From positions 15,748,001-15,812,000 of the forward strand of contig NC_045725.1 of the NCBI RefSeq assembly GCF_009834535.1: a stretch of DNA of 64,000 nt. Direction: 5' to 3'. Below, one piece after another: positions 1 to 23,385 of this stretch; position 1 is the first letter of the stretch, and each line of letters opens with the position of its first letter. A program made the translations under genes and the position numbers. The notes under the pieces are model-generated. The model did no database searches. It was not told the DNA's origin and worked only from the letters and a program-made list of their open reading frames with translations. This DNA comes from Camelus ferus (taxonomy: Eukaryota).

Positions 1-1089
1 TTAGCACGCACCTTCCAGCCTTCTGTATCTAGAGCATTTGGCAAAACCTCAAACCCCGTGCAGAGAAAAGTGATTTCCAGATCAAGGCCTCTTGTCAACT
101 GTTGTGCAGCTTGTGCCCTGATCACAGGCCCTCAGCTGAAAGGGGTGGGCCAGCGAGGGCTCGAATCCAGCCCTTGTCCCGTTTGCCAAGCCCTGTGTCA
201 GCCTGGAGGAGTGGAGCTTCTCCTGGACAGTGCTCTTTAGGAGTGCTGCTTGTTAATCTGCTCGCTCTGGGGTCCATGCAACCAAAAGTCTTTGCTTACT
301 CCCTTTCAGAACAAACCAGGCTATCAAGTCTAGGGAGCCTGCACAAATGAGGTCTGCAGGGGGGACCTGGTTTCCCTTGCATCCAATTTTCGGAGCATTA
401 AACCTGTCCTTGGGAGGCTCCGACTCAAGGACATGGGTGGGGTCCTAATGTCAAGTAACTGAGATTCCTCAGTGCCATGCCAGCTGGCATTTTCCCCATG
501 TCTGCTGACTAAGCCTTGCACAAAAAATCCACACCTTTGTTTACCAGCCCCTAAAACCGTGCCTTGGCTCTCTGAGCAGTTTCTGTCTACGTGGAAGCCA
601 GGGAAACCTGGGAGACCTCTGTCTAGCAAGGAGGTTTTCTTGGCCAAGTCCTTCCGCAGACCTCTGGGAGGTCACTGCCATGTTGGGACGGCGGGAAGCA
701 GCCTCCATCCCCTGTGCATGTCCTCCGGTGTTTTCTCCATGGCAGGTCTTCACGTGTCCCGTGTCCATCCATCACCTATGGTGTAGCTGGCCAAGAGGAG
801 AGTGGAGGCCTGGGTCCCTTGTCTGAGTGACTCTGGTCTAGAAACCTGTGAACTGGGGCAGGGAGCAGGGTTGCGGGGGGTGGTGTGCCAGCGGGGGGGG
901 GGGTAGCTGTTAGTACCCAGGCTGTGGTCTGGATAATTGTGTGTCTTCTCCCTTCCCTTGGCACTTGTAAGTGCAGCCTGAACCTATGTGTGGTAGCAGA
1001 AAGATGATCTTTTTTTTCTTTTTTTAAGAAAGATGATCATTTTTATAAAACATTTCAAATTTTATAAACCACCGAGACTTAATACATGT

Positions 1090-1910
1090 AAACCATTTTT
1101 CATATTGGTTTCAGATACAAGATTTTAAAAAGGAAAACATTGGAAAGAGAGTTGAAGCCCCTTTGTGGCCCTCCCCCATCTGATTCCTCCCCCTCCAAAC
1201 CAAATGCACTAATCTTCCGACATTAACTATTGTTGGTGTGTTTCCCTCCTTCATGGTATTTATGCCTTCATTACTTCTGTTTGTATCTATAAACAACCTA
1301 TAGAATTGTTTTGGTTGCTTCTGAAATTTACATGAGTGGACCTATCCCTTTAAAAGTTGCTTTTCTCCATTCAACACTGTTTGTAAGGTTTATCCAATAC
1401 GTATAGATCTTGTCTGTTCTCCTTTAACTCCTACATGTAAACCGCCATCGTGCAAGCAATAGTTTCGCCATTGTTCTGCTGAACCTTTGAGTCGTTGCTG
1501 CTTTTTTGCAGTCATAGACAGTGCTGAGACGAACAGCCTGGGACATCTGACTTGTGTGCGTGTGTGAGGGCTTCTTTGGGGTGTGTTGAATAACTGGGCT
1601 ATAGTATATGTATTCTCCAGCTGGACCGGATATTACTAAATCCCTCTCCAAAGTGGTTGGACCAATTTTCAGTCTTAGCCACAGAGTAAGAGCTCCCTCT
1701 CCCCTTCCTCCTCACCTACATTTGGTGCACACTCTGGCCTTTCCATTGGGTGTGAATTGGTCCCCTACTGTTCTCATTTGTATTTCCTGATTATGAGTGT
1801 GGTGGGTGTTTATGGGCTGTCTGGGCTCCTGATAAAGCTTCTGAAAGCTGTTCTGAATGTGGCTTTTGTCCTGCTGGTAAGCATCAGGGTCAGGCATCCC
1901 ACACGTCTAC
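1090..1910 (-). mobile_element. Old L1M fragment
   Basis: Antisense L1M 3' motifs (tagaattgttttggttg..ctgaaatttacatgagtgg; ctggactatattactaaatccctctccaaagtggttg-like; ttctcatttgtatttcctgattatgagt). Boundaries approximate. Confidence 0.6.
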
Positions 1911-2039
1911 CGGTCACAGGATCATGCTGACCACACACCACCGAAGCTGGGGCAGCGCTCAGGGTTTGGCTCTAAGTTATAGTTGAAATGGTTATCGGCC
2001 CACTGATTCTTCCTGTGATCTTGGTTGTCTGTTTCTTGA

Positions 2040-2950
2040 ATCTTTGATGTTGACTCACAGCTGAGTTCCAGTGACACTTGTCAGTGAATATTTCTGAACA
2101 CTGTGCTGGAAGCACCTGGAGTTCCTCCATTCAAGGAGCTTACAGTCCACGGGAATCCACACGCTATTCAGGGCGGGATATAATGTGTTGGAATAGGACA
2201 CAACCTTCGTAATGAACTCTGTGCCATAAGAAGTAATGGAAATGACAAAAGCAACGTTTATACAGGGATGTGCCTATTTATTAAATTGGGAGGTCAAGGG
2301 AGGGTTAGATTAGTAAGGTCTTGGACAATCGGGACACCCTCCAGAGAGGTTGTGCCTTGAAAGCAGCCAGCCTTTTGGGTAGGCAGAGGGGAGAAGGGGG
2401 AGGGGTGGGATTAAAGGCTGTATGAGCTGAATCGTGGGAGACGGCAAAGTGAGACACAGTTTAGAGTGCTCGTAGCAGCAGCAGAGTTCTGAAGCTTCTT
2501 GAGTCAGGATTGGCATGATGAAAACTTCCCTTTTCTCCTTGCTCCATCCACCCCAGATCCTGAAGGCACCGTCTGGCTGATGCGGGGTACAGCCATGTGC
2601 ACCCCGCCCCTGGACTTTTGGCTTCACTGGTGGTTTCTTTTTCCTCCTAGATTGACTTTTTGCGTAGAAGATCTTGAGAGCACCCGCATAGCCCCTGGCC
2701 AAGAGCTCTGGTTTCACAAGTGTCGGGATGGCTGGGGAATGAAAAACGAAACCAGGTAACCGGGACCTTCTCAGAGGTTCAAGCAGTGCATGTTGACGGG
2801 TCCCCTAGTGTACACTGGACATGAGTCTGGGCACTCGGGACATAGCGATGAACAAAACAGACCAAAGTCCCTTCCTTTATGAAGCTGATCTTCTGCTGGA
2901 AGGAGACAGACAAATCAGTGGGATAGACAGGGTGGTGGAGGGTGTGAGTG
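2040..2950 (-). mobile_element. L2 fragments (about 2040-2320 and 2760-2950)
   Basis: L2 3' antisense motifs: ctgaacactgtgctgg..caaggagcttacagtc; gcactcgggacatagcgatgaacaaaacagaccaaagtccc..ggagacagacaa. Confidence 0.55.
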
Positions 2951-3509
2951 TCCCTTTGCCTCTTGTTCTACCTCACCCTGTAAGGGTCACAGCCATGGTC
3001 CTGCTGGAATGAGGTCTTTCCAGGACTAAGTCCCCAGAGTTGGCACCCACGTCCCCATCTTAGATTGAACTTCTGCGTAGTGGCCAGGGCTGAGGGAAGT
3101 TCCTGGGGCTTCCTTCTGGGCACTAGGCTGGACTGGAGAGTTGGGTGGGAGGTAAGGGAGAAGCACAGATGAAGTCCTCTTTTAAGGTTTTCTGGAACCC
3201 AGGCTGGTGTGGGTGGATATTTGTGGGCAACTATCCCCCTTTCTGAGAAGCAGGAGTGCTCGTGTGTGTGGCTCTGTATGCCACCAAGGGGTCATCTTGC
3301 TTCAGTGTCCCCATTGCTCCATGCTGGGGTCTCACTATTTCAGAATTGGGGAAGGCTGATCTCATGGTATAAGGCAATGGGTACATCCAAAAGGGGAATC
3401 TGTCACATACCCTCTGAGCCTAAATGCCTGCTGTGGAGGAGGGCGATGGCCCCCCACGAGCCTCCACCCTTTGCCCCATCCAAGGTACTAGATAATAATC
3501 CTGCTGCCA

Positions 3510-3740
3510 TGCACTGAGCACTTAGTGTGTACCCACCGGCATTCAGTGCCCCCCACACATCATCTCATTTGCTTTTATCATCAGGCCCAATATGCTGGTA
3601 TCATTGAGCTTGTGAACAGTTAGGGAACCCCAGGCTCAGGGAGGTTGAGTCACTTTTCCCCAGTCCCCCGATGGGTGATGGCAGAGTGAGGATTTGAAGC
3701 AGGTTGGTTTACCCTGAAGCCCGTGCTCTTTCTTGAGCAT
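3510..3740 (-). mobile_element. MIR
   Basis: gcactgagcacttagtg..ggaaccccaggctcagggaggttgagtcacttttccc..gcagagtgaggatttgaagcagg. Confidence 0.65.
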
Positions 3741-4133
3741 GGAGGTACCACTTGCTCAGAGAAGTCTCCTCTCCTTCATGTGGGTATCAATTATCAAGCA
3801 GCTGCACCCATGCTGGGGTCCCCTGTGATTAACTGTCTGCCAACCCTGAGGACCAGGCTACATCCCAGCTGCTCTGTCTCCTGTTCAGGAACATCAATGT
3901 GACCACAAACTCCGTGATCACAGGACTTGTGGGATTCTGAAAACTGCCCATCTAATTAAGTGACTCAGTCTAGTGTAGGCTTATATGATTTTCTACTATG
4001 ATAATAATTCTAATTCTTTACGTTTGTATTCAAATTTATACCTTTCCAAATGCTGCCATATGTATTAATTTCATTGATCCTCAGAACAGCCATGAAGATT
4101 GCAAGAAGGGTTGCTATTCTTATCCTTATTCTT

Positions 4134-4299
4134 TTTTTTTTTTTAACATTTTTTATTGAGTTATAGTCAGTTTACAATGTTGTGTCAAATTCCAGAGTAG
4201 AGCACAATTTTTCAGTTATACATGAACATGCATATATTCATTGTCACTTTTTTTTTCGCTGTGAGCTACCACAAGATCTTGTGTATATGTCCCTGTGCT
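4134..4299 (-). mobile_element. Young L1, 5'-truncated 3' end (about 165 bp)
   Basis: Poly-T then aacattttttattgagttatagtcagtttacaatgttgtgtcaaattcc; same family as 13774-14442 and 44021-44430. Flanking direct repeat cttatccttattctt at 4119-4133 and 4298-4312. Confidence 0.92.
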
Positions 4300-6384
4300 T
4301 ATCCTTATTCTTATATATTTCTTTGCTGCTCCAGAACTTCTTAACAGTTGAGAATGCTGTAACTGCCTCATAATACCTCTTTGAGAAAACAAGTTATCCT
4401 TTCCTTTACCCTTAAAGGAGCAGAAAATAATGGGAACCCAAGTCATAAATTAACACCTAGTCACATGTTAGCCCTTGAGTACTCTCTCTGCTGACATGGA
4501 TACTGTTCACCTGTTCACTGAGAAGGAGACTGAAGTTCTGAGAGGTCCCATGGCACATCAGTGTAGCTGAGACTAGAATCAAGATCTCTTGACTCTGCCT
4601 TGCCCTCTTCCTGCCACACTGCAGGGTCTCTTGTATTTCAGATCAAAGCAGCAAGGCATTGATGGTTCTCTCTGCAGTTGTGTGTGTGCATGTGCCTGTG
4701 TGTGCGTGTGCCTGCTGTGGGTCAGTGTTGTGCAAAATCTGCAAATGCCAGCATTGAGGTATATGGAACTAGGAACCCCGAGTGGGCTCCAGTGTGGTGT
4801 TTCTCAAAGTGAATCTGTGGCTTGATGGGGAAGCAGGAGGAAGGAACACTCAGGACCTTCTCCATTTGTTCTGAAAGGGAAGCAATAAAAGAGTGTGATG
4901 AGGTATGTAAGAAAGCTTGGTCTTGAGGTAAACAGAGCTGCGTGTTTGCTATGCCAGCTAATGAATCACACTTCCACGTGGTTCCTTTCAGTCCAACCGT
5001 GGAGCATTCCTGAGGGTGCCAGCAAGGGCCCCCGCCTTCCAAACACATGGAGGAACGTTACTGCTGAGGACCCACCTGCTGGAAGGACCCCTCTTGACGC
5101 TGGAGCCCTGGGAAGAGCCTGCTTGCTGGGCCCAGCACCTGGCCTCCTGTGATGGCTGGGACTTCTCGCTGGAGCAGACCACGCACTGCTGTTCCTGCTG
5201 TTCCTGCTGCTGCTCTAGAATAGCGCTAACTCCAGATCTGTGTGCAAACAGCCGAATGCCAGGCCTCTGTGCACCTCGGGCTGGTTTCTCAGTGACCAGA
5301 GGAGCCTGTGCTTCACCTGACAAGGAACCCTGGCCCTGGAGTGGCTCTGTGTGGGAGGCTGTCGGCTGTCTGACCTGACTTGAGTTGTCGTGAGGGGTCT
5401 TTCTGCTGGAAGCTGACTCGTGTCAGGATGGCAGACCTGGGACTTATTCACCCGGGACGGGAGAGTAGGTCTGAGGAGGCCCTTGCTGGTGTTGGGGTTC
5501 AATTGGATAACCGGCTAAATGTACTGTTTACCTTTTAGACATTCCGTCCTGTTCCCCAACTCACTCTCTGAAGCACACATCATTGGGTTTCTTATTTTCC
5601 CATTGCTCCCTTTTTAATTGGACAGATGTTTATTAAGCACTTAAACTTAATTAGCACGTGGCCATAGACACATTAGTAAGTCGCTGCAGACCACTTCCTC
5701 ATTTGAAACCCAAGGGGATTAAGATGTCTAAACTCCCTTCGAGTTGAGATGATCCATGAACATGCATGTGATCAAAGGCACGCGGGGCACTGGGAAGGCT
5801 ACAGGATATAAGAGTTGAAGACCCTGAGGGTTAAGTGATTTCGACCTATTTCTTCTTAGTTAACATGCATCCCCTTTAAGCGTGACATCTTTGATCACCA
5901 GCAGAGTGGTAAGCAGAGTAGCAGATGTGCTGGGGCCAGAATGGTGACCAATGGCCAAATGTGATTGCTTCAGAGCAAAACCTCTTCCGTGTAGGAAGTT
6001 GGAAGATATTACGTAGGTTATACATAGCTGTTTATACAGAAACCAGCACCTGTCATACACAGCTGGTGCCAAGATTTAATTAATGCAGTGTTTTTTTTCC
6101 TCCTTGAAATACCTTGCTCTCATATGAGTACCTTTTCTGAGTTGAGCATTGTCAAAAAGCCTCCAATTCTAGATCTCGATTTGAATTGATATACATGATA
6201 TCTGAGGAACCCTTTTATAATTTTCTAAAGATTTGAACATGCATCACTTAATTAGAGACTCACAACAGGGGGTGAGAAGGGCAGTTACTATTATCTCTGT
6301 TTTACAAAAACCCAGGCTTAGTGAGGTTTGGCCACATGCCTAGAACTATATACCAAGTTGATGGTGGAGCCAGGTAAGGACCCA

Positions 6385-6464
6385 GACCTCCTGGAGGCAA
6401 TGCCCATGGTATGGTTATCTCTGCGACCTCCTGGAGGCAATGCCCATGGTATGGTAATCTATGC
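6385..6464. repeat. Tandem duplication, 2 x 40 bp, 38/40 identical
   Basis: gacctcctggaggcaatgcccatggtatggt(t/a)atct(c/a)tgc at 6385-6424 and 6425-6464. Confidence 0.96.
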
Positions 6465-7153
6465 AACTCCATCAAGACTTCTACATCGTTTCCCACCAAT
6501 ATGCCCCAGATATGACAAACCAGGACTCTTTTTCAGAGCCATCCAGAAAACCCTAAACCCTTTTATTGATATGTAACCAGGAGAACGAGAGTGCCAAGTG
6601 GTTTGGATTTTTATGGATGAGGTTAATTTGGAAGGAGATGGGATGCCAGGTGGTGGTGGTGAAGAGCAATTTTCTCTGTGCTTAGATTTTTAAAGGGCAT
6701 TGTTTTAATCTGTATTGTGCCAAAGTTGTATCTTTGTTCAGTGCCAAACCTCTGAAGACATGACCAGTCAAATACCTTAATTCAAGGTATTTTTTCTCAA
6801 TCCAACGGGGTGCTTTTTCTGTTGCTTCTGTGATTTCTAGCCAAAGTAGAGTTTGTTATTGACTGTGCATCCTGGTTACTTTCTGCTTCTGCTTTTAGTA
6901 GCAGAAGCCTTGGGAATCAAATCCCCAGTGGGTCCTGTATTTATACATTTGGCTTGAAGCCTTATTTGTACATAATGATGCTTTTTTTTTTTAATGCTTA
7001 CAATACTATTTATTTCTCAAGTGTATATAATGTATAAAAACAAATATATGGTTAGTTTTTACTTTATGATTAACCCATTTCAAGATTAAAAATTGTTAAT
7101 AGTGAAATAATAAAAATCTACAAAATTCTTAGTGGTCTGGCAACTCAATTCTT

Positions 7154-7278
7154 TCTGGGGGGGGGTAATTAGGTTCACTTATTATTTATATACCTTTAGA
7201 GGTGGTGCTGGGGATTGAACCCAGGATCTTAAGTATGCTAAGCATGTGCTCTACTACTTGAGCTATACCCTCGCCTCC
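7154..7278 (-). mobile_element. tRNA(Ala)-derived SINE (camelid Vic-1-like)
   Basis: Minus strand GGTATAGCTCAAGTAGTAGAGCACATGCTTAGCATAC..GGGTTCAATCCC with A/B boxes; TSD caactca(a/g)ttctt at 7141-7153 and 7279-7291. Confidence 0.93.
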
Positions 7279-8211
7279 CAACTCAGTTCTTAAAATTTGA
7301 AAGAATTATGACTGCTTGGGGTTTAACAAAGTTAAATTAATGTAGGATGTATTCTCTACTTGGTACTAACTGTTGGTAGGAAGTGGACAACAACTCTTTT
7401 CACTAAAGAACAAGAGAAAAATTATTTGGGTTGCAGTGGAAATGCTTGAAGGTGGATGTTAGGAAGAAATGGGGATGGCAGCTAGACATTGGGGGACGCT
7501 GGTGAGGATATATGTTTGGTCTCGTGGGATCTAGACAACGGTGACTTAAACCAGCTAGAAGGTGAATTCTCTATTGTGTTGAAGTCCCAGTAGGTATTGA
7601 GGTTCTGTTCCATAAAGCCAAGAGGGGTTCAGGCTCTTATTTTGCTGTGCCATTCATAGGATGTCCCCCTTATCCCCACAGTTGAAAGTGTCCCCATCAG
7701 GGCCTCTTTCAGCTTGTGGGAAGGTGGAAAGGGAAAGGAGGACATGTCCTCTTTTAAGAGAATGATCGAGAAGTTGCCCACACACTACTGGCCAGAAATC
7801 AGTCAGATGATCACACCAGAGGCTGAAAAATACTGTTTTTACTTGGGGTGCCCAGGGGCCCAGCTGAAAATGCAATTACTACTTACAAAAAGTGAAATTG
7901 CATAATGCCATCTGTCCATCAGGAATTCATTTTTTATTCCCTTTAGGTCATCCTTTAAATCATTCCATCTTGTAGTCAGATTTTAGTAATCTTAAACTGA
8001 TCTACCACTATGAAGTTTGATGAATTACATAAATTTGACTTTCTTTCTAGTCTTAAATGTTAAAATGTTTTAAAATGAGAAGAAATCTCTCTGCAAGGGG
8101 CCTTCATGATGGTGGAAAGTGGCTGCTCTTCCTTTCCACCCAAGACATTCTGAAATATCAGGCTTAATCATGGGAGTAGGGGAGGGACTGTGTTAGAGAG
8201 TAAGAAATACG

Positions 8212-8214
<3 letters not shown>

Positions 8215-8248
<34 letters not shown>

Positions 8249-8266
8249 CACGTGTGTGTGTGTGTG
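8215..8266. repeat. Compound (TG)n(CG)n(TG)n microsatellite in the tail position of the MED25 retrocopy
   Basis: Direct read; lies between the 3' UTR end and the TSD. Confidence 0.97.
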
Positions 8267-10542
8267 TTAAAAGGAACTTTACTGGGTGTTGGGCGTTCAG
8301 ACGAGGTCCATGAGGATGTTGTCCACCATGATGCTAGGCTGCAGGCCCTGCTAGGGGACCCAGCCTGGGGACCTCCCCCTCAGCAGCATCTGACCTGGCA
8401 GTGGAGCCCTCAGTGGGAGCTGGGCAGGCCAGGCAGGGCTGGGTGGGTGGTGGGTGCAGGAGGGGAGGCCCCAGCTGAGAATGCCCCAGGCCCTGGTGTG
8501 GTGGTGGCATTAGTGCAGGGGCCCCTGATGGCTGGAGGTGGTGGAGGGAGGCCTCGGGGGACACCCCAGTCTGGAACGGTGGTGGTTTAAGGAGGAAGCT
8601 CCACAGCTGGGTTTTGTGGCCGAAGGATGAGTCTGGGAGGGGGTTGCCCAGTGGCCACTCCAGGAGGGCTTTGTGGGGCACCTGCGGGGTAGGGGGGGCT
8701 GGGAGGCACCCTGGGGCTGGGGCTGCCCCGCAGCCGCTGAGGCCCCTGTAGTATTTTTAGGCCAGGGCTGCGGCGGTCAGAGCAGTTCTGTGAGGGTCTT
8801 GCGTGGACCTCCAGAATGAGGCCCAGCCCTGGGGGCGCCTGCTGTGCCCCTAATCTGCGCTGCTGCTGGACTTGCTTGTGGTGGGTGATGACCGGCCGGA
8901 TGCCGCTGACGAAGCTGCGCTGGTCGTAGGAGATGAGTCGCCTGGAGATCTTCTTGGACGAGTTCAGGAGCATGAGCACGCGCGCCTCGCAGAGGGCCGT
9001 GCGGCGGAAGTGCACGCAGCCCGCGGAGCCGATGCCCAAGAGGCGGTAGAGGCCTTTGAGGAAGTCCAGGTCCTTGATGAAGCGGAGCTGGACCATCCCT
9101 GATTTCCAGAACAAAGGGCCCAGGGTGGTCCGCAACTGCTGGGGGATGAGCCGCACGATCAGCGCCTGCGGCCACTGCCCGGCTTTCAGGTTCTCGCGAT
9201 ACTTCATGTAGCCCCCCCCCCCCCCCCCACACAAGGCAGGGGCGCGTCAGCTTGGTGTCGGCGTCCACGGAGGCAGGTTTGGGCTTCTCCTGCCACCTGA
9301 GGAACCCTCTCCAGGCCAGGAGTGTTCTTGAGACTGACTAATGACCTCCGAGAGCCTGAGCCCGGAGCTGGGCCGGAGAAGGGCCGCTCACGCCGCCTGG
9401 GGCCATGGTGCCCGCCAAGGACGTGCCCCAGGCTGCGCAGGGGGCGCCGGGCCCGGCCCAGCGGCCACAGTGGAGACCAGGCTGGGCTGGGAAGCGGGAG
9501 GCGGCCTGGGGGCGCCAGGGACCCTTGGGGGCAGCGGGAAGCCTGGGCCAGGCTGTAAGGGGCCCACTCCTGGAGCGGCTTGCTGAAGAGAGTTGAAGGG
9601 CGAGAAGCGAGGGCTCAGCCCAGCCTTCTGGTTCTTGGCAGCCTCTGCTGCGTTCTGCGCTGCCGCCTGAGCTGCACTCAGGTTCCCGAGGACCTGGTAC
9701 TACTGCTGAGGGACTGGTGGGGCGAGGCAGAGGCTGCTGGGGGGCTGCCGAGAGTGTAGCCCCCGAGAGTGGAGCTGGAGGCAGGGCACAGGCTACTTTG
9801 GCTGGAGGGGGCCTGGGGCCGAGCCACCCGCAACGGACAGCACAAGCCCCCGCACCAGCACCATGTGCATCGGGTCCTGGCTCACGTCTGCTGGCGGCTG
9901 GAGTGGCTCCAGCATGGCCGGAGGAAGCGCCTTCTCCAACAGAAGCTGCAGGGCAGGCAGCTTCTGGGGACACACGATGGAGACGTAGATTCCTGGCTCC
10001 CTAGTCTTCTGCACAAGGCTCTCAGACGTGCACCCGGAGTACTTGGTGCTCTCGACAGTAGGCGGCAGCAGGTCCGGCGCGAGTTACAAGATAAGGAGGC
10101 CGACTCGGTGTGTCTGGTCGTTGTGCTCGCGCGTCTTCTTGAAACTGCCTGCAAGGCCCTGCTGAGACCTTTGGCGTGAGGCTGCAGCCTTCGCCACCCC
10201 ACCCATGAACTTCATGCCATCTAGCTAGGTGAAAAACTCAGGCGCTGCTGGTGGGAGCACGACATTGGATGTGGGACTTGGGAGCGCTGTCCGCCGTGTT
10301 GAACACCACCAGGCTGTACTAGGCCCCGCATAGTCTCCCCTGAAGCCCGTCTCGGCAGGAGGATCACCATTAAAATACTCGACGGCCGGGAGCAGGTAGT
10401 GCTTGTGGAGGCCCTCGAAGCAGGTCCCCAGGTTGGCCTTGCCCTTTATCACAAACACCACGTCAGCTGCGAGGCCCCCTGCGCAGGCCGGCCCTCGGAC
10501 CCGGGGACAATGCTTCACGCTGCAGATGCTGCAGCCGCGGGC
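8267..10542 (-). pseudogene. MED25: Processed (intronless) pseudogene of Mediator subunit MED25, full length; CDS-equivalent about 10511 down to 8297
   Basis: Minus-strand frames give MED25 peptides in collinear order with no introns: ADVVFVI..NLG..FEGL.KHYLLPA.EYFNG (VWA), [76 protein letters not shown] (ACID), [21 protein letters not shown], ending DNILMDLV-TGA (8297-8299). Start codon degraded to ATT (10511-10509); in-frame stops (TAG 10227-10225, TAG 9330-9328) and several frameshifts. Perfect TSD agaaatacgttct at 8203-8215 and 10543-10555; the minus-strand site reads TT|AAGAA (L1 endonuclease-like). Confidence 0.97.
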
Positions 10543-11039
10543 AGAAATACGTTCTTAAGCTAATTCAGGTGACAGAGGAAAGGACTGAAACCTTCCCTCT
10601 GGCAGACTAAAGGAACTTTTGAAATTGCCCAGAGGTAGAGGTGTAGTCTTGGTGCCTCCATTTTGTCTTATCTGACTTGGGGATTCAGTTGCTGTTCCTC
10701 CCTCCACTAATTAGTCAGAGAACTTCCATGGAACCTCCTTTGACCCTGCAAACGACCTGAAGCACTGAACTCCTTGGAAGGATGGATGCCAAGTAGGTAC
10801 CAGAACAACCATTGTTACCAAAGGTGATTTTCTTAGTTTTCACCTCTGTGTTCAGAGCTGCCCCGGGCCCTCAGCCATGTTAGTTCTAGGAGGGCTGTGA
10901 TTTTTATCTGGCTTATTTGCTGTTGCAGCCCTAGAATGTAGACTAGTGTCTGGAACATATTTAGGTGTTCAATAAATATGTAAATGAAAGAATAAAATTA
11001 GGTACAAGAAATCAGTTGCTTAAACAGGCAATAGGGGAA

Positions 11040-11210
11040 TTGAGAAAAGAGAAACTAGTTTGGAGTCAGAAGTCCTGGCATGTCACTCAGTATTATGTGG
11101 GTTTTAGGCTAAATGCAATCTTTCCAAACTTCTACTCATCTGAGAAACACAGATAATACCTTTCAGGGTTGTCGTGATTATTAAATATATAGAGTAAAAA
11201 TATATAGTGT
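11040..11210 (+). mobile_element. MIR
   Basis: tttggagtcagaagtcctgg..ctcatctgagaaa..taatacctttcagggttgtcgtgatt. Confidence 0.55.
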
Positions 11211-11659
11211 TTTGTAAACATTTGAATTGGGAAAGAGCAAAGATTAAAAAAATACATTCTGTGGCTATGTGGACGTTTATATAAAATAAAAGGGGCTCTG
11301 TTAATCACTGGGCAAGGAATGGGTGGTTAGATAGATGATGCCTGGGAAACTGGGCTCATTAAAGGATAAACCTACGACTAGATCCCTATTTCACATCATT
11401 TACAAAGATTAATTCCATTTAAATGAAAGATATAAATGTAAAAGAAAAGTATAAAGCTGATAGATGTTAGAAGTATGAATTTGAAATCTGGGTAAAACCT
11501 GAGGAAATATGAAATGTCACAATCAGGACAATAAGAAATAGAAAACCTGAATAGATCAACAAATATTAAAGAAATTAAAAAGCTAATAAAAGATTCCCTT
11601 TTACCTCATACATTCAAAAAACCCCTAGTCTTAGGAGGTTTTCTTTGCTTCTTTTAAAT

Positions 11660-11847
11660 GGTTTGGATGATTAGATTAGTCCCACACAGGATGGCCACCC
11701 TTTTGAGTAACTCAAAGTCTACTGATTAATAACTTAATCAAGGAATGACATACCATCACTTCAAAGGTTCTTGCCACACTTCGGAGGAAGGATTACACAG
11801 GGTATGTAAATCAGAGGGAGGGAATCTTAGGGACCATTTAATTTTCT
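11660..11847 (-). mobile_element. MaLR MLT1-like LTR fragment hosting the SINE pair (continues about 12093-12110)
   Basis: gattagtcccacacaggatgg..ctcaaagtctactgatta..cagagggagggaatcttagggaccattt|agaatctgcct. Confidence 0.5.
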
Positions 11848-11966
11848 GAGGGGGAGGTAATTAGGTTTCTTCATTGATTTCTGCTTGGAGGAGGTACTGG
11901 GGATTGAACCTGGGAGCTCTTGGGTGCTGATCACGTGCTGTACCACTTGAGCTATACCCTTCCCCC
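11848..11966 (-). mobile_element. tRNA(Ala)-derived SINE, diverged; downstream unit of a head-to-tail pair
   Basis: ggaggtactggggattgaacctgggagctc..taccacttgagctataccc plus the cctaattacctccccc tail motif. Confidence 0.88.
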
Positions 11967-11971
11967 AGGAA

Positions 11972-12092
11972 CTATTTTATTTTATTTTATTTTATTTTTT
12001 ATTATTATTTTTTAATGGAGGTACTGGGGATTGAACCCAGGACCTTGAGCATGCTAAGCATGTGCTTTATCACTGAGCTATGTCCTCCCCCC
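11972..12092 (-). mobile_element. tRNA(Ala)-derived SINE; upstream unit of a head-to-tail pair
   Basis: ggaggtactggggattgaacccaggaccttgagcatgctaagcatgtgctttatcactgagcta with a (TAAAA)n tail. Confidence 0.92.
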
Positions 12093-13773
12093 CATTTTAG
12101 AATCTGCCTTTCTTAGTGTCCTTCCCTAGGGGTGTGGGCAAGTAAGTGTGGTGGATGCAGTCTAGGGAATACAGCACAACATGGACTAGAAGTGCTGGTC
12201 CTGATTCAACTTGGATAGACCTTGAAAACTGTCAAATGAAAAAGTAAGCAATAAAAGGATGTTTATAGGACAAAAAAAGTTATATAAATGAAAATGCATA
12301 TGCTCAAAATAACACTATACATTTTATAAGAATATGTATCAAATGTGTTAAGAATAGGTGCCCAGGGTGGGAGGGAGGAAATGAAAGTTAAGATTAAGTG
12401 GAGGGTGGGGAAAAAAATAAAACGAGAGATTTGAAGATGAGAGAATGCCATAAACTGAGGCGAATGGATAATTCAACTCCCTGAAGCTGGGATACAAAAG
12501 GAAATAAATTGAAATACTTAAAATAGAAACTAAATTCTTTGACACAGCTCTTTTCCTTGCTTGTTTTCCTCTGCCAATGACTTAGAATGATTTTAGGCAT
12601 AAGCAGAGCAATTCCTAATGTGCTGTACAAACTATTTCAGTGGCTTCTTTTCTCAAGCAGGTTTCCTAGAAAGGCTGTTGGATTTGTAGGGCAGGTCACA
12701 CAGAGGCGGAACACAAGTGCCGTCGTTGCTAGAGGGGAATGGGACCTGCCCTGTTGGGGTGGTGAGGCAAGCAACTCTGCCTTGTCTGAAAGAATAGAGT
12801 CCTTATTAAAGTAACAATATAAATTAGCAAAATGTTATAAGAATTATAGGCAGTCTCCAATTTGTGAACATACGTTCATTTTTAAATTGAATTTTGAGAA
12901 CATTCAAGCTTTCCTCTATAGGAACAATGCTATAAATCGTAGTTATATACCCGGTATTTGCTAGAACACACACACCACATAGCTGAAACAGGATAGGAGT
13001 GGAGCTCACTTGGGTTCTGAGTCTTGGGAATCAGGAGAAGGAAAAGAAGGAAGACTTCCAAGGCTGACTGTAATTAAAATGTTGAACTAAATGAAGTTCA
13101 CATTTGTCACTCTGATGTTTCTTTCTTATGTCTCTTGCTTTCTTCGCTGTACATTATAATGGGAGTATTCTTCTTGTTGCAATAAAGCTTATGATCATTT
13201 TTAAATGGCTGCAGAAATTTCCATACAATGGGTAGATGATCATCCTTTGCTTAGCGGTTTCTCTATTGCTGACGATCAGGTCCACACTCCTTTTCTGCCC
13301 ACTTTATTCCCCCCGGGTACCTCCTTTCCTGGCCCCTGTTACACATTCTCTAGTTACTCTGAGCACTTCCCCTCCCAGACCCCTAAAGCACTCCATTTTC
13401 CAAACTTACTTGACTTTCTGCTCTCTCAACCCAAGCTCTTGTTTATTCAGTGCAGCTGACTTCTGCAAAGATTCGTTGGAAGCTTTGAACTGAACTCAGT
13501 CATGCTTATGTATCAATGGCTAGTAGACCTCTAACCAGTCCAGAGTTATTCACATTGTTAAAAGAAGATGCTCGTTAATCCAAATTAATCTTTGCATTGA
13601 GCCAGCTGAGCAAATCAAAAGGAAAGTTTCCTGTTAGGGTAGAAAAAGATTGGATCAGGGTGATCACCTTACAAATAGGCTAATCCTGCTTGGGAATCTT
13701 TCCTCTAACCAAGTCCCCTAAGATATTGCTGGGTTTGCTGGGTTTGCACAGTTGATTTCATTCCTTTAGTCTT

Positions 13774-14442
13774 TTTTTTTTTTTTTTTTTTTACATTTTT
13801 TTGAGTTATAGTCATTTTACAATGTTGTGTCAAATTCCAGTGTAGAGCACAATTTTTCAGTTATACATGAACATACATATATTCATTGTCACATTTTTTT
13901 TTCACTGTGAGCTACCACAAGATCTTGCATATATTTCCCTGTGCTATACAGTGTAATCTTGTTTATCTATTCTGCATATGCCTGTCAGTATCTACAAATT
14001 TTGAAATCCCAGTCTGTCCCTTCCCACGCTCCTCCCTCTTGGCAACCACAAGTTTGTAGTCTATGTCTATGAGTCTGTTTCTGTTTTGTATTTATGTTTT
14101 TTTTTTTTTTTTTTTTTTAGATTCCACATATTAGTGATCTCATATGGTATTTTTCTTTCTCTTTCTGGCTTACTTCACTTAGAATGACATTCTCCAGGGA
14201 CATCCATGTTGCTGCAAATGGCATTATGTTGTCATTTTTTATGGCTGAGTAGTATTCCACTGTATAAATATACCACATCTTCTTTATCCAGTCATCTGTC
14301 GATGGACATTTAGGCTGTTTCTGTGCCTTGGCTATTGTAAATAGTGCTGCTATGAACATTGGGGTGCAGGTGTCTTTTTGAAGTAGGGTTCCTTCTGGAT
14401 ACATACCCAGGAGTGGGATTACTGGGTCATATGGTAAGTCTA
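13774..14442 (-). mobile_element. Young L1, 5'-truncated: ORF2 C-terminus plus 3' UTR and poly-A
   Basis: ORF 14404-14117 YPEGTLLQKDTCTPMFIAALFTIAK..KQPKCPSTDDWIKKMWYIYT.EYYSAIK is the L1 ORF2 C-terminus. TSD ttcattccttta(g/c)tctt at 13757-13773 and 14443-14459. Confidence 0.96.
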
Positions 14443-14589
14443 TTCATTCCTTTACTCTTGATCCTGTAGATCCTCTAAGCAGCAGTTTTTGTTTTTCCCT
14501 CCCCTCCTCTTTAATGGTTTCCATGTGGCATTGGTTGCCATTGAGAAGGGGAGAGAGGTGTCAAAGCTGTCTTTTGTTTTTTTCCTCTT

Positions 14590-14713
14590 TTTTTGGTGGG
14601 GAGGGGTTGTGGTAATCAAGTTTATTATTTTTTTTATTTAATGGAGGTACTGGGGATTGAACCCAGGACCTTGTGCATGCTGTGCTCTACCATTGGGCTA
14701 TATCCTCCCCCCC
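14590..14713 (-). mobile_element. tRNA(Ala)-derived SINE
   Basis: ggaggtactggggattgaacccaggaccttgtgcatgctgtgctctaccattgggcta (small internal deletion). Confidence 0.9.
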
Positions 14714-15559
14714 GTCTTTTCTAACTGAGGGTTTATTGGTAAATTGGGAATGGTCTCTCCTAAAAAAGCTTAATAAGCAAATAAAAAGAATAAGAGTAAA
14801 GCAAATACAAAGTAGAGTTCAAGTCATTTGTTTTCCTAAATGTCTGCAGTTGGCAATACGGTGTAACCTAGACTTTCCTTATATCATTTCAGTGCATGTG
14901 TGTGTTGCAGTGGGAAAGGGCTGCTGGAAGCTAGGACAGGTCTAAGCAGGCAAGGGCTTAGGTCCAGAGGTCAGCAAGGAGCAGATTTATCTGGACCAGT
15001 GCTAATTATCTCAGCCCAAAGGAATCCACATTCAAATCTGTTTATACTTTCACAGGAGGGGGGTGATCATCATCAGATGCCACAAAAACTTGAAAGCGTT
15101 GAGGCCAGGAAGAGAGGCTGGGAATATCTCCCTCGAATGGAGATGCTAAGAGCACAGATCTTTGCTTCTGCTCTGGTCATTATCCCAAGACAACTTCGGT
15201 GGGATTGTTGCGAAGCCAGAGCCTCACTGAGTCACCGGCAAGGCGTGTATTCCATCTGACTCATTTCAGTCCACTCATTTTCTTTATTCTGTCAGAGATC
15301 TCAGTCCTCCTGTGGTCCTGTGCCCTTTTTTAGGACAAACACATCTTCTTTCTGACTTGGTTGCTCCTAACTCTTTCCACAGGTTTCTTTATTGTCTCAT
15401 CAAAAAGAAACCCTCAGAAATGTGGTTTCACAAACCTGCAGCTCATTTCTGCTGTGACCCAATCACACTGCTGCCATCTCTCCCTCCTCCAAGGCAGACC
15501 TCTTCATCCATACATCTCCTTCTCCTCCTTGCCTTCCTCGCCCTCCTCCTCTTCTTCAT

Positions 15560-16960
15560 TAAACGGTTTTACACACTGAGGTTTAATGGACACACAATAC
15601 ACAGCACCTATGTAAATCATGTAATTTGATGTTTTGGTATGTGAAGTCATCAGTGAAACTGTGACCTCGTCACCACAGTTAAGATAGTGAACATGACGAT
15701 CACCTCCAAAGATTTCCTTATACCCCTTGATAATCTTTCCCACTGCCCTCTCTTCAGCCAATCACTAATCTGCTTCCTGTCACTGCAGGTTAGTTTTATA
15801 AGGGGAATGAATGTAGAGTATGCTCTCTTTTGTTTGCCTTCCCTCACACGGCATAATTATTTTGAGATTCATCCATGTTTCTGCGTGCATACTGGTCTTT
15901 GTAAGGACGTGGCTTTTTTTCTTGGGTTCATGTCTAGGAGTGAAATGGCTGCATCATGTGGTGGATGCATGTTCAGCTTTTTAAGAAACTGGCAAATTGT
16001 TTTCCAAGGAAGTTGTAACATTGTTGCATTCTCAGCAGCAATGTGTGAGAATTCCAGTTGTCCACATCCTTGTCATCACTTGTTATGGTCAGTCTTGTTT
16101 TTNNNNNNNNNNNNNNNNNNNNNNNNNNNNNNNNNNNNNNNNNNNNNNNNNNNNNNNNNNNNNNNNNNNNNNNNNNNNNNNNNNNNNNNNNNNNNNNNNN
16201 NNNNNNNNNNNNNNNNNNNNNNNNNNNNNNNNNNNNNNNNNNNNNTCCATTTGGGGAGAGGTTGTTTGTTTTCTTCTTACCAGGTTTTGGGGATTATGTA
16301 TTCTGGATATAAGTTATCAGGCATATGATCTGCAAATATTTTCTCCCAGTCTGTGGTTTGTCTTTTCATTCCCCTGTCTTTTGAAGAGCAGATGTTTACA
16401 GTTTTGATGAAATACAATTTATCAATTTATTTTTAATGGATGTTGCTTTTAGTATCATCTGTAAGAAATATTTACCTAACCCAAAGTTACAAAGATTTTC
16501 TCTTATGTATTCTCTGAAAGTTTTATAATTTTAGGTTTTAAGTCTATGGATGTTTTAAATTAATTTTTTGTACATAGTGTGAGGTATTGAGAGTTCTTTT
16601 TTTTTTTTTTTTAACGCAGATATTTAGTTGTTCAGGCAGTATTTGTTGAAAAGACTAGTCTTTCTCCACAGAACTGCCTTAGCATCTTTGTCAAAAATCA
16701 ATTTTTTTACAATATATTTGTGGCTTTCTTTCTAGACTCTGTTTTATTGATCTAGTTTGATGTCAGTAACACTTCTCATGATTACTGTAGCTTTATGTCA
16801 AGTCTTGAAATTGAGCACTGATAGTTTTCCAATTTTGATTCATTCTAAAATTGTCTTAGCTATTCTAGGTCATTTGCATTTTCATATGAATGTCAATTTA
16901 TACAAAAAGTCTGCTGAGATTTCTGTAGGGATTGTATTATATTTATAGAGCTGTTTGAGG
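15560..16960 (-). mobile_element. Old L1M (MB/MC-like) ORF2 3' part and 3' UTR, contains gap 16103-16245
   Basis: Antisense L1 motifs: ttttgagattcatccatgtt, tttttaagaaactggcaaattgttttcca, tgcaaatattttctcccagtctgtgg, atttgttgaaaagact, ctttgtcaaaaatca. Confidence 0.85.
16103..16245. other. Assembly gap (N)
   Basis: N run. Confidence 1.
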
Positions 16961-17222
16961 ATAATTGATTTCTTACATCAGGTTTTTCAACCCACCTTCA
17001 TCAGTTCTTCATTTGAATTATAGTGCTTTTTATGTTAAGTTGGGTATTTTATAGCTTAGTTTTCTACTGACAAAATTATTTCTTCAGGGAGCTATGGCTT
17101 ACTCTTTCCAAATATGTAAAACTTATTTTTGGATGAAACAATTTTAAGCAAACACAATTACTTATTTACAATGGCATTTTTATTTTTAAAGTTAAAAATT
17201 GGAACATTAAAAAATGCTAAAA

Positions 17223-17369
17223 GGCGGGAGGTGGTAGAGCGCATATTTAGCATACACGTCCCGGGTTCAATCCCCCGTACCGCCTCTAAAAATAAATAAA
17301 TAAATAAATAAGTAAATAAACCTACTTACATCACCCCCAAAACTAATAAAATTTTTTTTAAAAAAAAAA
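17223..17369 (+). mobile_element. tRNA(Ala)-derived SINE, diverged, with (TAAA)n
   Basis: ggtggtagagcgcatatttagcatacacgtcccgggttcaatccccc then (taaa)n; aaaaaatgc occurs on both flanks (probable TSD). Confidence 0.88.
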
Positions 17370-17392
17370 TGCCAGGATACCACTTCCGATGG

Positions 17393-17765
17393 TCTGTCGG
17401 ATGTGTGGAGTGCCTCTCAGACGCCCCCTTCAGATCCGAGGCCCTCATCCTCTGGCTGCTGGGAGTATTGGTGGTTGACGGCTCTCATCGAGCCTCTCTG
17501 GGGATTGCCCTCAGCCGACCACGGGACTCAAGGCCACAGCCCGTCCCCAGAGGCAGTACACATCCAATGACTAGTCCATAAGGCCTGACCTCCTTGCCTA
17601 AAGACAGAACCACTCTGAAGGGCTGCAGAAGCCGCACAGCTCCTGGTGGGATCAGCCGAGGCCTCTGTGATGTCAAAGTTCAACCCCTCCCCCACCCAGT
17701 AGACGTCCTGCCCTCTAATCTCCATCTCAGACAGTCTGTCTCCCAGGGAATCCAAGTGAAGACAA
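17393..17765 (+). mobile_element. ERVL LTR16-like solo LTR
   Basis: cagacgcccccttcagatccgaggccctcatcctctggctgctgggagtattgg..gcagtacacatccaatgactag..ccatctcagacagtctgtctcccaggga resembles the recalled LTR16 consensus. Confidence 0.7.
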
Positions 17766-18490
17766 ACGATAATTTCCTAATCAGCTCGCAGTTAATGCAA
17801 GGGCTTAAAGGAATGGAGATAGAGACCCAGGGCCAGCCCACAGGGCCCAGAGATGAGATGTGGCAAAAACCGGAAGCCAACTATTTTGACTGTTGGCTTA
17901 TGGTCAAAGTCACATCCTTCACTTAGAAGGACTTTTCCCTTTGACATGTCACCTTATGAAACCATCTTGACTTTGGGAGGAGTGGAAAGCCCCTGGCAGG
18001 CTTCTGCGTCCTTGGTGGGGCAGGGACACGGAGGGCACGCGGCAGAGAGAGAGAGAAAGAGGGACTTTCTGTACAGGCTAATTGACGCTGGCTGGAGAAG
18101 CTCACCCTCTGGGCACAGGGCATCACAGTTGGAGGGGCCGCCGGTAGGGGAGGGCTCACTTTATTAACTGTTCTCAACTCCTGTTTGATGGGCCCAGGAG
18201 TGTGAGCCGGGAAGCAGGAGGAAATAGTACCAAAAACCACTGTAAAATTAAACATTGTGATCCTCAAACATGGTTTTAGTCACTTATTGATGCTAATAAA
18301 ACCTAGAGTGATCAGAACTGACAGGTGGCGACCAGGATCCTCAAGGAGGCATTTCTCCACGGCTCTTCTCTGAGACAGGAGCCAGCATTCCGCCTTCCGT
18401 TTTGACATAAATCCTTCCCTACTGTGATTCCTCTTGGAATCACCCCACATTAAAAAAAAAAGTTAGAATAGGGCCTTTAAAAACAGCCTT

Positions 18491-18585
18491 AGGGTGGTGG
18501 GTAGTTATGGCTCAGTAGTAGAGTGTGTGCTTAGCATGCTATGAGGTCCAGGGTTCAATCCCAGCACCTCCATTAGAAAAAAAAG
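18491..18585 (+). mobile_element. tRNA(Ala)-derived SINE, short-tailed
   Basis: tatggctcagtagtagagtgtgtgcttagcatgctatgaggtccagggttcaatcccagcacctcc plus A-tail. Confidence 0.9.
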
Positions 18586-21454
18586 TCAAAAAACCATTGG
18601 TCAGCCCATGTAAATGAGTTTCACTTTATACAGCAGATATATTTATGTAAATTTAATTATATAATCATGACTAATAAATAATTGTATTATAAAGTCATTT
18701 CACCTGTTTTCCCTCCTTCGTTTGACATTTGCAACAATCTATGGCAGAGGAGGAAACTAAAGTTGAAAGAGGTCACTGGCTGGTACTGGGCCTCTTAGTA
18801 AGTGGATGAACTTGAACTTAAACTTGGGTCCACAGACACTAACACCGGTGTTATTTCCTTCCCTTAAAAGCACTAGAAGAATTTACCTTCCAGAAGACTC
18901 CTCCATAAGTCTGTATCAGTCTGGGTGTTCATCTGTTCCGAGGTGGAGCCAGCTGCTCTCTTTGAAGGAACACAAATTTCAAGACTTTCTCATAGGAAAA
19001 TGAACAATGAAGGAACCATCACCGTGGTGCCCTAGGTGAGTGGGAGATTGGCAGGCACCAAGGTTTCCACACTTGCCTAGCTGGCTTGCTGTGGGATACC
19101 AGCATTACGCACATTCCTAATGAAAGTCCTGGAGATGTTTTACCAGCAAAACTACCTTGGCAGTGGGAGGGGAGGCTCCCTGAGGAGGGGTTGGGGGGAC
19201 GGGACAGGAGGTGCTGTGGAAGAGGAGCTGCAAGCGAGGCCTGCACGCGCTCCAGCTGCCACTCGGTGAGGCAGGCCCAGAGGGTTCTGGAAGGAACAGA
19301 GGACCCAGTGTGAAACCAGGCCCTTCCCAGCCCCACTTCATTTAATCCTCACTCCGCTGCAGTGAGTTTTCCTTTCTTTTATTTCAAGTGTGGAAACAGA
19401 TTTTAAGAGGCTGAATTATCAAAGGTCAGAACAATTAGTGGGATATGAGCGCAGGTCTCTCTGATTCCAAATCTGTTGTGTTTAATCACTTGGTTTATAT
19501 TGAGTATAGAGGTAGGCAGGATAGTGAACTGCTTTGCATACCTGCAGGCTCGTATTTAAAATATTTCTTCAACATTTACCTAGTGGAAAAGTTCAGGCTT
19601 GGTGGGGGGGTTGACAGGTGGGGGCAGCATCCAGCGTGGATACAACACCTCCTCCCTCTGTGTGAGGCAGACAGGGCAGCTCTGGGTTCACCTGAGCCCA
19701 GTGTTGGGAGGGATGTCTTCCCCACCCTAAGCAGCCCATCAGAGTATCCCTTACAAGGACGAGCAGTTCGGCCCCTGAGAGGCAGCCTTGTAAACAACGC
19801 TGCCAGGGAGATGGCAGTGCTGAAGGCCGGATCCCTGGGCACTACCCTGTTTCCCCATGTGGTCAGACCACAGACCACATCCGTGGACACTCTGGAGAAG
19901 TCTCACATTCTGTCTATTGGCTTTGTTCATCATGGCCTGTGTCTATGCTCCGTTCAGGGCTGGCAGCCTACCTGGAAATGCTGGCCCCACTGGCCAGATG
20001 GCTCCACCTGGCCCTCCTCCATCTGGCTGTATTGCTCCTGTTCTGCAGCAGGGGTACAAGCACCCCTTTCTCAGCCAGGAGAACAGGAGTCAGGGGACCT
20101 GGTGACTGTTACCTGCTTGGGTGGCTTCCTCCCAAGAGACATCGCCTGCTTTCCCTTAGATTGCCAACCGCCCCAGGAAATCAGAGGACATCCTGCATCC
20201 ATCCACCTTAATCTGAAGGAAGTTTGGATTACAGGAAGACCATCCTCGAGGAAGTGTGCCCCAGGATTTGCACAAGATGATAAATAACCAAAAGCCTACT
20301 GCTTGCATTTTATTTGCTGTCTGTAAATCATCTACATATTTGATTGAGGCTGCTCTTCATGCATAGGTGAATGGGAAGTGAACTGAATATTTTTTAAAAC
20401 TAACTTTATACAATAATTCAGACATTTTTCCATCAAGGAATTAGTAGTCTACCAAGATTTCAGTCCACGGTGTGGGACAAATCTTATGTGCCCAAGCCAA
20501 TTTCAACATTTGGAAAAGATAAGGTGAGAATTTGTGCACAAGTGAGTATGGGTGTATGGGGATAAAAGGAGAGAAAGGAGCAAAGATGACCAGAGGTGAC
20601 TGGCAAGGAAGGAAGACCCAAGAAAAGCCTGCACCCGCTATGATGTGCTCATCGGAATGCTAATAATTATTAGAGGAAAGGAGACACAGAAGATGAATGT
20701 CCTGTCCCCTTTGGTGAGACGTAAGTCAGCTAGCCATGCCAGGGAGCCTGTCCTAATCTGTGCAAAGCAGGAAGGGCTATTGCCTGGTATTTACAAGATT
20801 CATCTATGCTCTAAAGATATGCAGATTATTCCATGAGTGAGAGACTCTGGAAGAATGCTCAGCTGGTGCTGGCAGAGATTGAATTTCCTGGAGGAAGATG
20901 GATCATCCTAGCCTGCAGATGTATACATGATTTCCCAGTGCCTACTGGTGAGTTTGAACAAATTCTATGAAGACAAATCAGCGAACACTATTAAGGAGTG
21001 TCATGAAGTCTAGGGGAAGATACTGGTGCAGTGGGTCTGGCCACCACAGGGGCAGGTAGGAAGGTCTGGAACATCTGGCTGTGAATGTAACATCTGAATG
21101 ATACGGTGTTATTCATCATGGTGTCAATTTTCCCTTCTTTTGTTCTGGAATAAGTCTCTCATGCATAACAAGTTGATACTCTAATAAGGATTTAATTAAT
21201 GGTTTTCCAATTCCTTTGAGAAAGAGAAATTAAATTAATTAAAGCAGGAAAGTGGACAGAAAAAGCAAGTGGCTTAGCCAAGATCTCATAGCTCAGTGGC
21301 ACCTAACTTGAGGTTTTTGACTCTAGTAAACGATCCAAAGGAATGTTACTGCTGCCTTCTCTCCTTGTATCAGTTTCTTTCCACCCAAAATGTTGGGGTG
21401 ACCAGCAGGATTCTTGTTTTTTTCTGGTCTTTTCAGAAAGCAAGAGGCCATTTT

Positions 21455-23223: not shown

Positions 23224-23385
23224 ACCAGTGCATCTCCAATTTGAATGTACAGGTAAACCACCTGATACTCTCATTAAACTTGACTCTAATTCAGTATGTC
23301 TGGGTGGGGCTCTCGTGAGATTCTGCGTTTCTAACAAGCGCCCTTGGGCTGCTAACATGGCCAGTGGGGACCACCTTTTGAGTAG
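23224..23385. mobile_element. MER5A-like hAT-Charlie DNA transposon
   Basis: cagtgcatctccaatttgaatgtaca..tctaattcagtatgtctgggtggggc..gattctgcgtttctaacaagc..ggaccaccttttgagtag. Confidence 0.8.

Follow-up and report, generated by a model that had tools for sequence, protein, structure and literature searches.

In this study, we performed a sequence analysis of a 64-kb window of the Camelus ferus genome (contig NC_045725.1, positions 15,748,001 to 15,812,000; all coordinates below are positions within this window), which carries on its minus strand, at 8217-10542, an intronless processed pseudogene of MED25. The copy spans the end of the 5' untranslated region (UTR), the whole coding sequence and the 3' UTR of its parent, as delimited by Pfam matches and by alignment to MED25 complementary DNAs (cDNAs). 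This retrocopy is an orphan CpG island with a substitution signature like that of GC-biased gene conversion, and it lies antisense within an exon of a spliced RNA.

Structure, Origin, and Age of the MED25 Retrocopy

The broken frames of the retrocopy matched Med25_VWA, Med25_SD1 and the Med25 ACID/PTOV domain in Pfam, and stop codons together with frameshifts were present in every one of the three frames. All 18 MED25 exon blocks of whale, sheep and panda (18/18) abut colinearly in the copy, and the introns are all absent. The insert is bounded by a perfect 13-bp direct repeat, AGAAATACGTTCT, representing the target-site duplication, with the left copy at 8203-8215 and the right copy at 10543-10555. 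According to the cDNA alignment, the start codon at 10509-10511 is dead (ATG to ATT), and the parental stop codon TGA is retained at 8297-8299, both on the minus strand. A (GT)n/(GC)n microsatellite at 8216-8267 begins where the parental cDNAs end and occupies the position of the former poly(A) tail; a relic of the poly(A) signal, AGTAAA, remains on the minus strand at 8278-8283, with the microsatellite just beyond it and no A-run left. The lost start codon, the stops and frameshifts, the intronless colinearity and the 13-bp duplication confirmed the dead MED25 retrocopy that an earlier note, made from the sequence of this window, had proposed. In addition, the alignment revealed a poly-C run of 17 nt at 9212-9228 (poly-G in the retrocopy sense), an insertion that makes the ACID part about 14 nt longer here than in MED25. 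Because the C. ferus and dromedary assemblies that we compared are both gapped at this same spot, the true length of the run is uncertain.

The retrocopy was also found in a Camelus ferus sequence (L001, ~99.5% identical) and in C. dromedarius (L007, 1.25% different), and the protein searches for orthologues of the copy returned matches to Camelus models only. Parts of the pseudogene are annotated as proteins in both sequences, namely L001 6001-6663 as EPY86024.1 ("hypothetical protein CB1_000334017", C. ferus), and L007 4881-9972 and 10001-10873 as KAB1256166.1 ("Mediator ... subunit 25") and a 384-aa model (dromedary). Both of these public camel protein annotations are very probably annotation artefacts. 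A literature search found no paper that treated MED25 and a retrocopy together.

For the parental sequence, MED25 cDNAs were rebuilt from three genomic loci, those of right whale (L003), sheep (L002) and giant panda (L004), with each splice junction set by GT-AG signals and the annotated protein. Parental states were assigned by parsimony on ((whale, sheep), copy), panda, and the polarization rests on these three outgroups; a stricter set comprised the sites where whale, sheep and panda all agree (hereafter outgroup-agreed sites). MED25 exons were not found in the C. ferus PTOV1 locus and its 10-kb upstream flank. The Camelus bactrianus protein P0358 (XP_010945300.1, "PTOV1 homolog isoform X1" / MED25) is a read-through chimera of MED25 and PTOV1, which tracks MED25 from residue 104 to ~467 and then PTOV1.

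Compared with the inferred parent, the retrocopy shows 272 changes over 2221 sites, a divergence of 12.2%, and the non-CpG divergence is 0.107. The mammalian neutral rate is about 2e-9 per site per year, and the non-CpG divergence at this rate would place the insertion some tens of millions of years ago, as a rough figure. Codon 332 is GTC in the retrocopy and CCC in whale, sheep and panda; its first-position G is shared with a camel-specific Ala, which suggests that the source gene was MED25 of the camelid lineage.

CpG Content of the Retrocopy

The CpG-richest core of the retrocopy, at 8870-9330 on the minus strand, derives from the ACID/PTOV-domain coding part and contains 34 CpG with an observed/expected (o/e) ratio of 0.71. 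Within 8881-9200 there are 29 CpG (GC 0.64, o/e 0.89), against 4 CpG in 8341-8700 (GC 0.68, o/e 0.105), exactly the numbers that the earlier note had reached by hand counting; the CpG o/e ratio of the whole 64-kb window, taken as background, is 0.24. A sliding 200-bp scan under the Gardiner-Garden/Frommer definition (>=200 bp, GC >=0.5, CpG o/e >=0.6) called two CpG-island-like blocks, one at 8741-9440 (700 bp, GC 0.65, o/e 0.64, 48 CpG) and one at 9881-10660, in the VWA-coding 5' part (780 bp, GC 0.59, o/e 0.63, 43 CpG). Set against the stricter figures of Takai-Jones (>=500 bp, GC >=0.55, o/e >=0.65), the 700-bp block has an o/e of 0.64, and the core has an o/e of 0.71 but a length of 461 bp. 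The 3' part at 8268-8869 on the minus strand, which comprises the Pro/Gln-rich C-terminus and the 3' UTR, is CpG-depleted (o/e 0.21).

Comparison with the parent indicated that the CpG density of the core was partly inherited and partly gained. The columns of 8881-9200 hold 19 CpG in whale, 17 in sheep, 18 in panda and 18 in the inferred ancestor, and the retrocopy, with 14 of them kept and 15 new, has 1.6 times the parental number. The case that the earlier note had set against its own claim, a parent already equal in CpG density, thus does not hold (17-19 CpG in the living cDNAs versus 29). Over the whole core, 17 of 24 ancestral CpG were kept and 17 are new; the retention of ancestral CpG in the core is 71-78%, and about 60% of its CpG density is inherited. 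In 8341-8700, the inferred ancestor had at least 8 CpG (~8 unambiguous) and the retrocopy has 4. The contrast of 29 versus 4 is therefore acquired in part, as the core gained 15 CpG, and in part inherited, because the 3' part of the parent was already CpG-poorer in the inferred ancestor. The 3' part (8268-8869) kept 6 of its 19 ancestral CpG; the copy as a whole retains 69 of 118 and carries 51 new ones. In living MED25, the columns of 8341-8700, which belong to the Pro/Gln-rich C-terminal exons, contain 21 CpG in whale, 19 in sheep and 9 in panda, which may reflect a rise in the GC and CpG content of the parent MED25 within the whale-ruminant lineage.

Substitution Bias in the Core

Over the whole copy, 83 weak-to-strong (W>S, A/T to G/C) and 137 strong-to-weak (S>W) changes were counted, giving an equilibrium GC of 0.56. 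The core at 8870-9330 showed 31 W>S and 18 S>W changes (equilibrium GC 0.73), the 5' part 35 and 68 (0.53) and the 3' part 17 and 51 (0.46), so that the W>S:S>W counts of the core (31:18) differed from those of the remaining copy (52:119; Fisher p=4.7e-5). At outgroup-agreed sites, the counts were 28:16 in the core, 27:56 in the 5' part and 9:49 in the 3' part, and the core differed from the rest of the copy (36:105) with Fisher p=7.9e-6. Expressed per W site, W>S changes reached 0.166 in the core versus 0.078 in the rest (p=0.0025). Because the region had originally been picked by eye, a coordinate-free scan with permutation was run as well, and it placed the best 450-site window at 9290-8826 (p=0.023) and the best 320-site window at 9270-8936 (p=0.041). 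The W>S skew described in the earlier note thus persists after polarization against whale, sheep and panda and in a scan that ignores its coordinates, and the W>S bias of the core is real but moderate. An excess of fixed W>S over S>W changes clustered in 1 kb or less, as seen here, is what a GC-biased gene conversion tract would show.

At the protein level, the amino-acid changes listed in the earlier note were all present within codons 441-543, namely T>A, E>G, K>A (GCG), M>V, Q>R (CGG), L>R (CGG), F>L, H>R (CGC) twice, F>S, V>A (GCG), Q>P (CCG), N>S and N>H. Across ACID codons 432-543, 34 of the 38 changed codons were nonsynonymous, with 23 W>S versus 10 S>W changes. Whale, sheep and panda have the same ACID protein sequence, which C. 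bactrianus P0358 matches exactly over the N-terminal half; the changes in these codons therefore belong to the copy.

The recent changes polarized between Bactrian and dromedary comprised 16 S>W, 4 W>S and 4 S>S, of which 3, 1 and 2, respectively, fell within the core. Judged from these recent changes, which are mostly S>W, the W>S episode is old and over. In the retrocopy-sense strand, the recent S>W changes (8266-10510) consisted of 14 C>T and C>A versus 3 G>A and G>T, an asymmetry in small numbers that on the RNA-coding plus strand appears as an excess of G>A and G>T.

CpG Decay in the Retrocopy and Its Flanks

Methylated CpG decays about tenfold faster than other sites. At outgroup-agreed sites of the retrocopy, the divergence of CpG sites versus non-CpG sites was 0.139/0.125 in the core, 0.200/0.095 in the 5' part and 0.406/0.115 in the 3' part. 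At a shallower time depth, the window was compared with the dromedary sequence, taking 8268-10542 as the copy and 1-8200 plus 10560-19238 as flanks. CpG<->TpG/CpA differences affected 3 of 127 CpG (2.4%) in the copy, with 0 of 34 in the core, versus 27 of 193 (14%) in the 16.7 kb of flanks (copy versus flanks p=3e-4); CpG transitions between the camel species are thus 6-fold rarer in the copy than in the flanks. Of the 26 window states that the C. ferus sequence covers, 25 are the same there, which rules out assembly error as the source of the states on the window side; errors on the dromedary side are possible.

Because CpG decay is slow there, both in deep time and between camel species, we infer from the substitution patterns that ~8870-10540, the 5' three-quarters of the copy, has largely been hypomethylated in the germline, in the past as at present. 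The 3' part (8268-8869) appears to decay more like ordinary methylated DNA. The segment that the earlier note had supposed to be unmethylated in the germline does show slow CpG decay at both time depths, but the extent of such a segment would be ~8870-10540, well beyond the core.

The copy also exceeded the flanks in differences between Bactrian and dromedary other than CpG transitions (1.1% versus 0.49%, 2.3-fold, p=8e-4). This excess could come from a GC-rich insert that is off compositional equilibrium, from hotspot-associated mutation, or from dromedary assembly errors.

Antisense Spliced RNA and Neighboring Features

The Logan RNA-seq contig L006 (1222 nt) matches the window at 9839-10823, 18871-19035 and 23182-23253 with 99-100% identity, and reveals an unannotated RNA of the plus strand with introns of ~8 kb and ~4 kb. 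Exon A (9839-10823, plus strand, the known part) is antisense to the retrocopy and ends at a donor, AAG/GT, at 10824; exon B (18871-19035, plus strand) lies between an acceptor AG at 18869-18870 and a donor, TAG/GTGAGT, at 19036; and exon C (23182-23253, plus strand), in which the contig ends, is preceded by a polypyrimidine tract and AG. Since both junctions (AAG/GTGATT...AAAAG/C and TAG/GTGAGT...TTTTAG/G, with slashes at the splice sites) are canonical GT-AG only on the plus strand, the retrocopy lies antisense within a long exon of this RNA. RNA-seq runs of 3-4 studies, mostly on reproductive-tract samples, contained 0.26-0.82 of the 31-mers of the copy, and the left flank (7310-8200) was represented in the same runs by 0.34-0.49 of its words. 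Contigs cannot show transcription starts, and because the RNA extends past the core on both sides, a start is not placeable in the core. Exact look-ups of ten open reading frames (ORFs) from the core and left flank in the RNA contig collection gave no match.

As for the surroundings, the nearest annotated neighbor in the dromedary is a lipase-family gene (Pfam Lipase and PLAT, 459 aa; L007 19224-20873), which lies just left of window position 1. It shares its strand with the spliced RNA and terminates ~8 kb short of the retrocopy, and read-through from it is possible. A 280-codon ATG-started frame without a Pfam match occupies 19445-20287 on the plus strand, in the second intron of the spliced RNA just past exon B, and Pfam searches of ten long ORFs elsewhere in the window returned nothing useful. 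Short interspersed repeats at 7149-7299 and 11842-12093 flank the retrocopy region, and copies with ~75-87% similarity occur at >=8 other places in the window.

Discussion

Our analyses favor, with a probability of roughly 0.6, the explanation that a CpG-rich insert stayed unmethylated as a retrocopy-derived island and that a past W>S fixation bias acted on its core. According to this explanation, reverse transcription of a camelid-lineage MED25 mRNA, with all introns spliced out, would have produced a cDNA that integrated into AT-rich intergenic DNA some tens of millions of years ago, and the insert would have become a pseudogene. Owing to the high GC and CpG content of the cDNA, ~8870-10540 would have acted as an unmethylated CpG island in the germline, with CpGs changing at a rate no higher than that of other sites, and the 3' part (8268-8869), poorer in CpG, would have decayed. 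The ACID-coding core (~8830-9290) would have undergone a past episode of W>S fixation bias, most likely caused by GC-biased gene conversion at a transient recombination hotspot; this episode would have doubled the A/T>G/C rate and made ~15 new CpG. The new CpG of the core would have survived because the region was not methylated, and the density would have risen above that of the parent gene. Today, the island would sit antisense inside the long exon of the GT-AG-spliced plus-strand RNA seen in reproductive-tract RNA-seq.

Several results weigh against this explanation or limit its reach. Both the hypomethylation and the gene conversion are read from substitution patterns. The reduction of S>W changes in the core is not significant by itself (p=0.17), the local W>S cluster is modestly significant once corrected by the scan (p 0.02-0.04, 320-450-site windows), and the scan with a 200-site window was not significant. 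We estimated that fewer than about 5 of the 57 core changes assigned to the copy branch may predate retroposition in the camel MED25 lineage, on the basis of the 16 sheep-specific and 3 whale-specific changes in the core. The recent changes carry no W>S bias, and the comparison of Bactrian and dromedary gives no support to a present-day hotspot. Moreover, classical gene-conversion islands are methylated and deaminate fast, as summarized in PMC8286816, unlike the camel island, where the W>S gain sits in a low-deamination region.

Among the alternatives, the one that survives best, although we consider it unlikely, is that the core is a CpG-island promoter or promoter-proximal region of the plus-strand RNA, with promoter activity in the germline accounting for the hypomethylation, and selection or processes tied to promoters, rather than gene conversion, for the gain of GC and CpG. 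Of the known exons of the spliced RNA, the most upstream one contains the retrocopy, and this RNA was found in reproductive-tract RNA-seq of several studies; the zone of low CpG decay, ~1.7 kb, has the size typical of a promoter island; and retrocopy-borne islands can act as promoters, as does RB1 CpG85 (PMC3839921, PMC3760807). However, the RNA reaches past the core on both sides (0.34-0.49 of the words in the left flank, ~0.8 in the copy), Sp1, NRF1 and E2F consensus sites are all absent from the copy, and promoter activity alone leaves the doubled A/T>G/C rate unexplained. Primate work, as far as it is summarized in PMC8286816, also found little evidence of selection on CpG density.

Plain inheritance with uneven decay is improbable and largely refuted. 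It holds that the ACID exons were CpG-rich and the 3' part CpG-poor from the outset, and that nothing special followed the insertion. The parent cDNAs did already carry 17-19 CpG in 8881-9200, and the ancestor about 8 in 8341-8700, which is what such a reading expects. Nevertheless, the copy holds 29, of which 15 are new, many of them made by nonsynonymous changes that would be impossible for the conserved parent. A methylated pseudogene at 12% divergence should also have lost most of its CpG, and the core kept 71-78%; the 6-fold rarity of CpG transitions between the camel species, relative to the flanks, argues in the same direction.

It is very improbable that the island is at once a camelid-specific germline differentially methylated region (DMR) and the promoter that drives the plus-strand RNA in germ cells or reproductive tissue, regulating the lipase-family locus by parent of origin or by tissue. 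If that were true, a retrocopy would have made a new lineage-specific imprint, as in human RB1. The chance of a germline DMR as such, methylated in oocytes, unmethylated in sperm, and imprinting the antisense RNA or its neighbors by analogy with RB1, Mcts2 and Nap1l5, is remote. Such regions usually combine a retrocopy origin, an island of this kind of size and a transcript that overlaps it (PMC3839921, PMC4122923), and the reduced but non-zero CpG decay of the 5' part would fit methylation in a single germline. Against it, a human survey found that 4 of 104 retrocopy-derived intronic islands were both methylated and unmethylated, with RB1 alone imprinted (PMC4122923), and the core is essentially without excess CpG decay. 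Finally, transcription-associated mutation gives an excess of A>G, and scarcely any credence is left either for this process, although the copy is transcribed, since the plus (RNA-coding) strand of the core shows the opposite (T>C 13 versus A>G 7), or for ectopic conversion by a GC-richer paralogue (PTOV1 or another MED25 copy), although PTOV1 has two ACID-like domains and adjoins MED25 (as the P0358 read-through chimera indicates), since at the 57 copy-derived core sites the camel PTOV1 exons carry the ancestral base at 4-15 per exon and the derived base at 0-1, which excludes conversion by PTOV1.

The favored explanation, an unmethylated retrocopy island with a past fixation bias in its core, makes this locus a clean example of a process that has already been described in other mammals, and the process itself is not new. 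The locus represents a natural experiment on the fate of a CpG-rich cDNA placed in AT-rich, methylated DNA, with three fates in a single insert: the CpG-dense part would have escaped decay for tens of millions of years, the tail decayed, and one segment came to exceed its parent. These observations support the views that CpG islands owe their protection from methylation largely to information in the DNA itself and that islands can arise through gene conversion. In addition, the comparison of CpG decay between two species, relative to flanking DNA, can serve as a proxy for germline methylation where methylomes are lacking, and the analysis flags two very probably artefactual database "proteins" as well as an unannotated spliced RNA.

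The closest known system is PPP1R26P1/CpG85 in intron 2 of human RB1, a proven promoter and maternally methylated imprint inside its host gene (PMC3839921, PMC3760807). Like CpG85, the camel element is a truncated or dead retrocopy of a CpG-rich gene, has remained a CpG island at its new location and is overlapped by a new transcript. Unlike CpG85, it lies between genes, close to one of the lipase family, the transcript crosses the island in antisense, and it is known here from sequence and RNA contigs. A broader comparison is offered by the 104 human intronic retrocopy-derived islands that were characterized by bisulfite sequencing, from which it was concluded that the epigenetic fate of retrotransposed DNA is set by its own sequence together with the integration site (PMC4122923). 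The camel island has the same kind of origin, and its split into a protected CpG-rich part and a decayed CpG-poorer 3' part fits that conclusion; it differs from the human islands in being read from substitution footprints and in a CpG gain beyond the parental level.

With respect to the regimes that Cohen, Kenigsberg and Tanay 2011 distinguished in primates, as these are summarized in PMC8286816, unmethylated islands with low deamination stand apart from islands shaped by biased gene conversion, which are methylated and fast-deaminating. On that summary, the low CpG deamination over ~1.7 kb of the camel retrocopy fits the canonical unmethylated regime, and the clustered W>S gain of its core fits the gene-conversion regime. 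Because the W>S gain sits inside the low-deamination region, the new CpG would have been kept, and the camel island would thus represent a mix of the two regimes.

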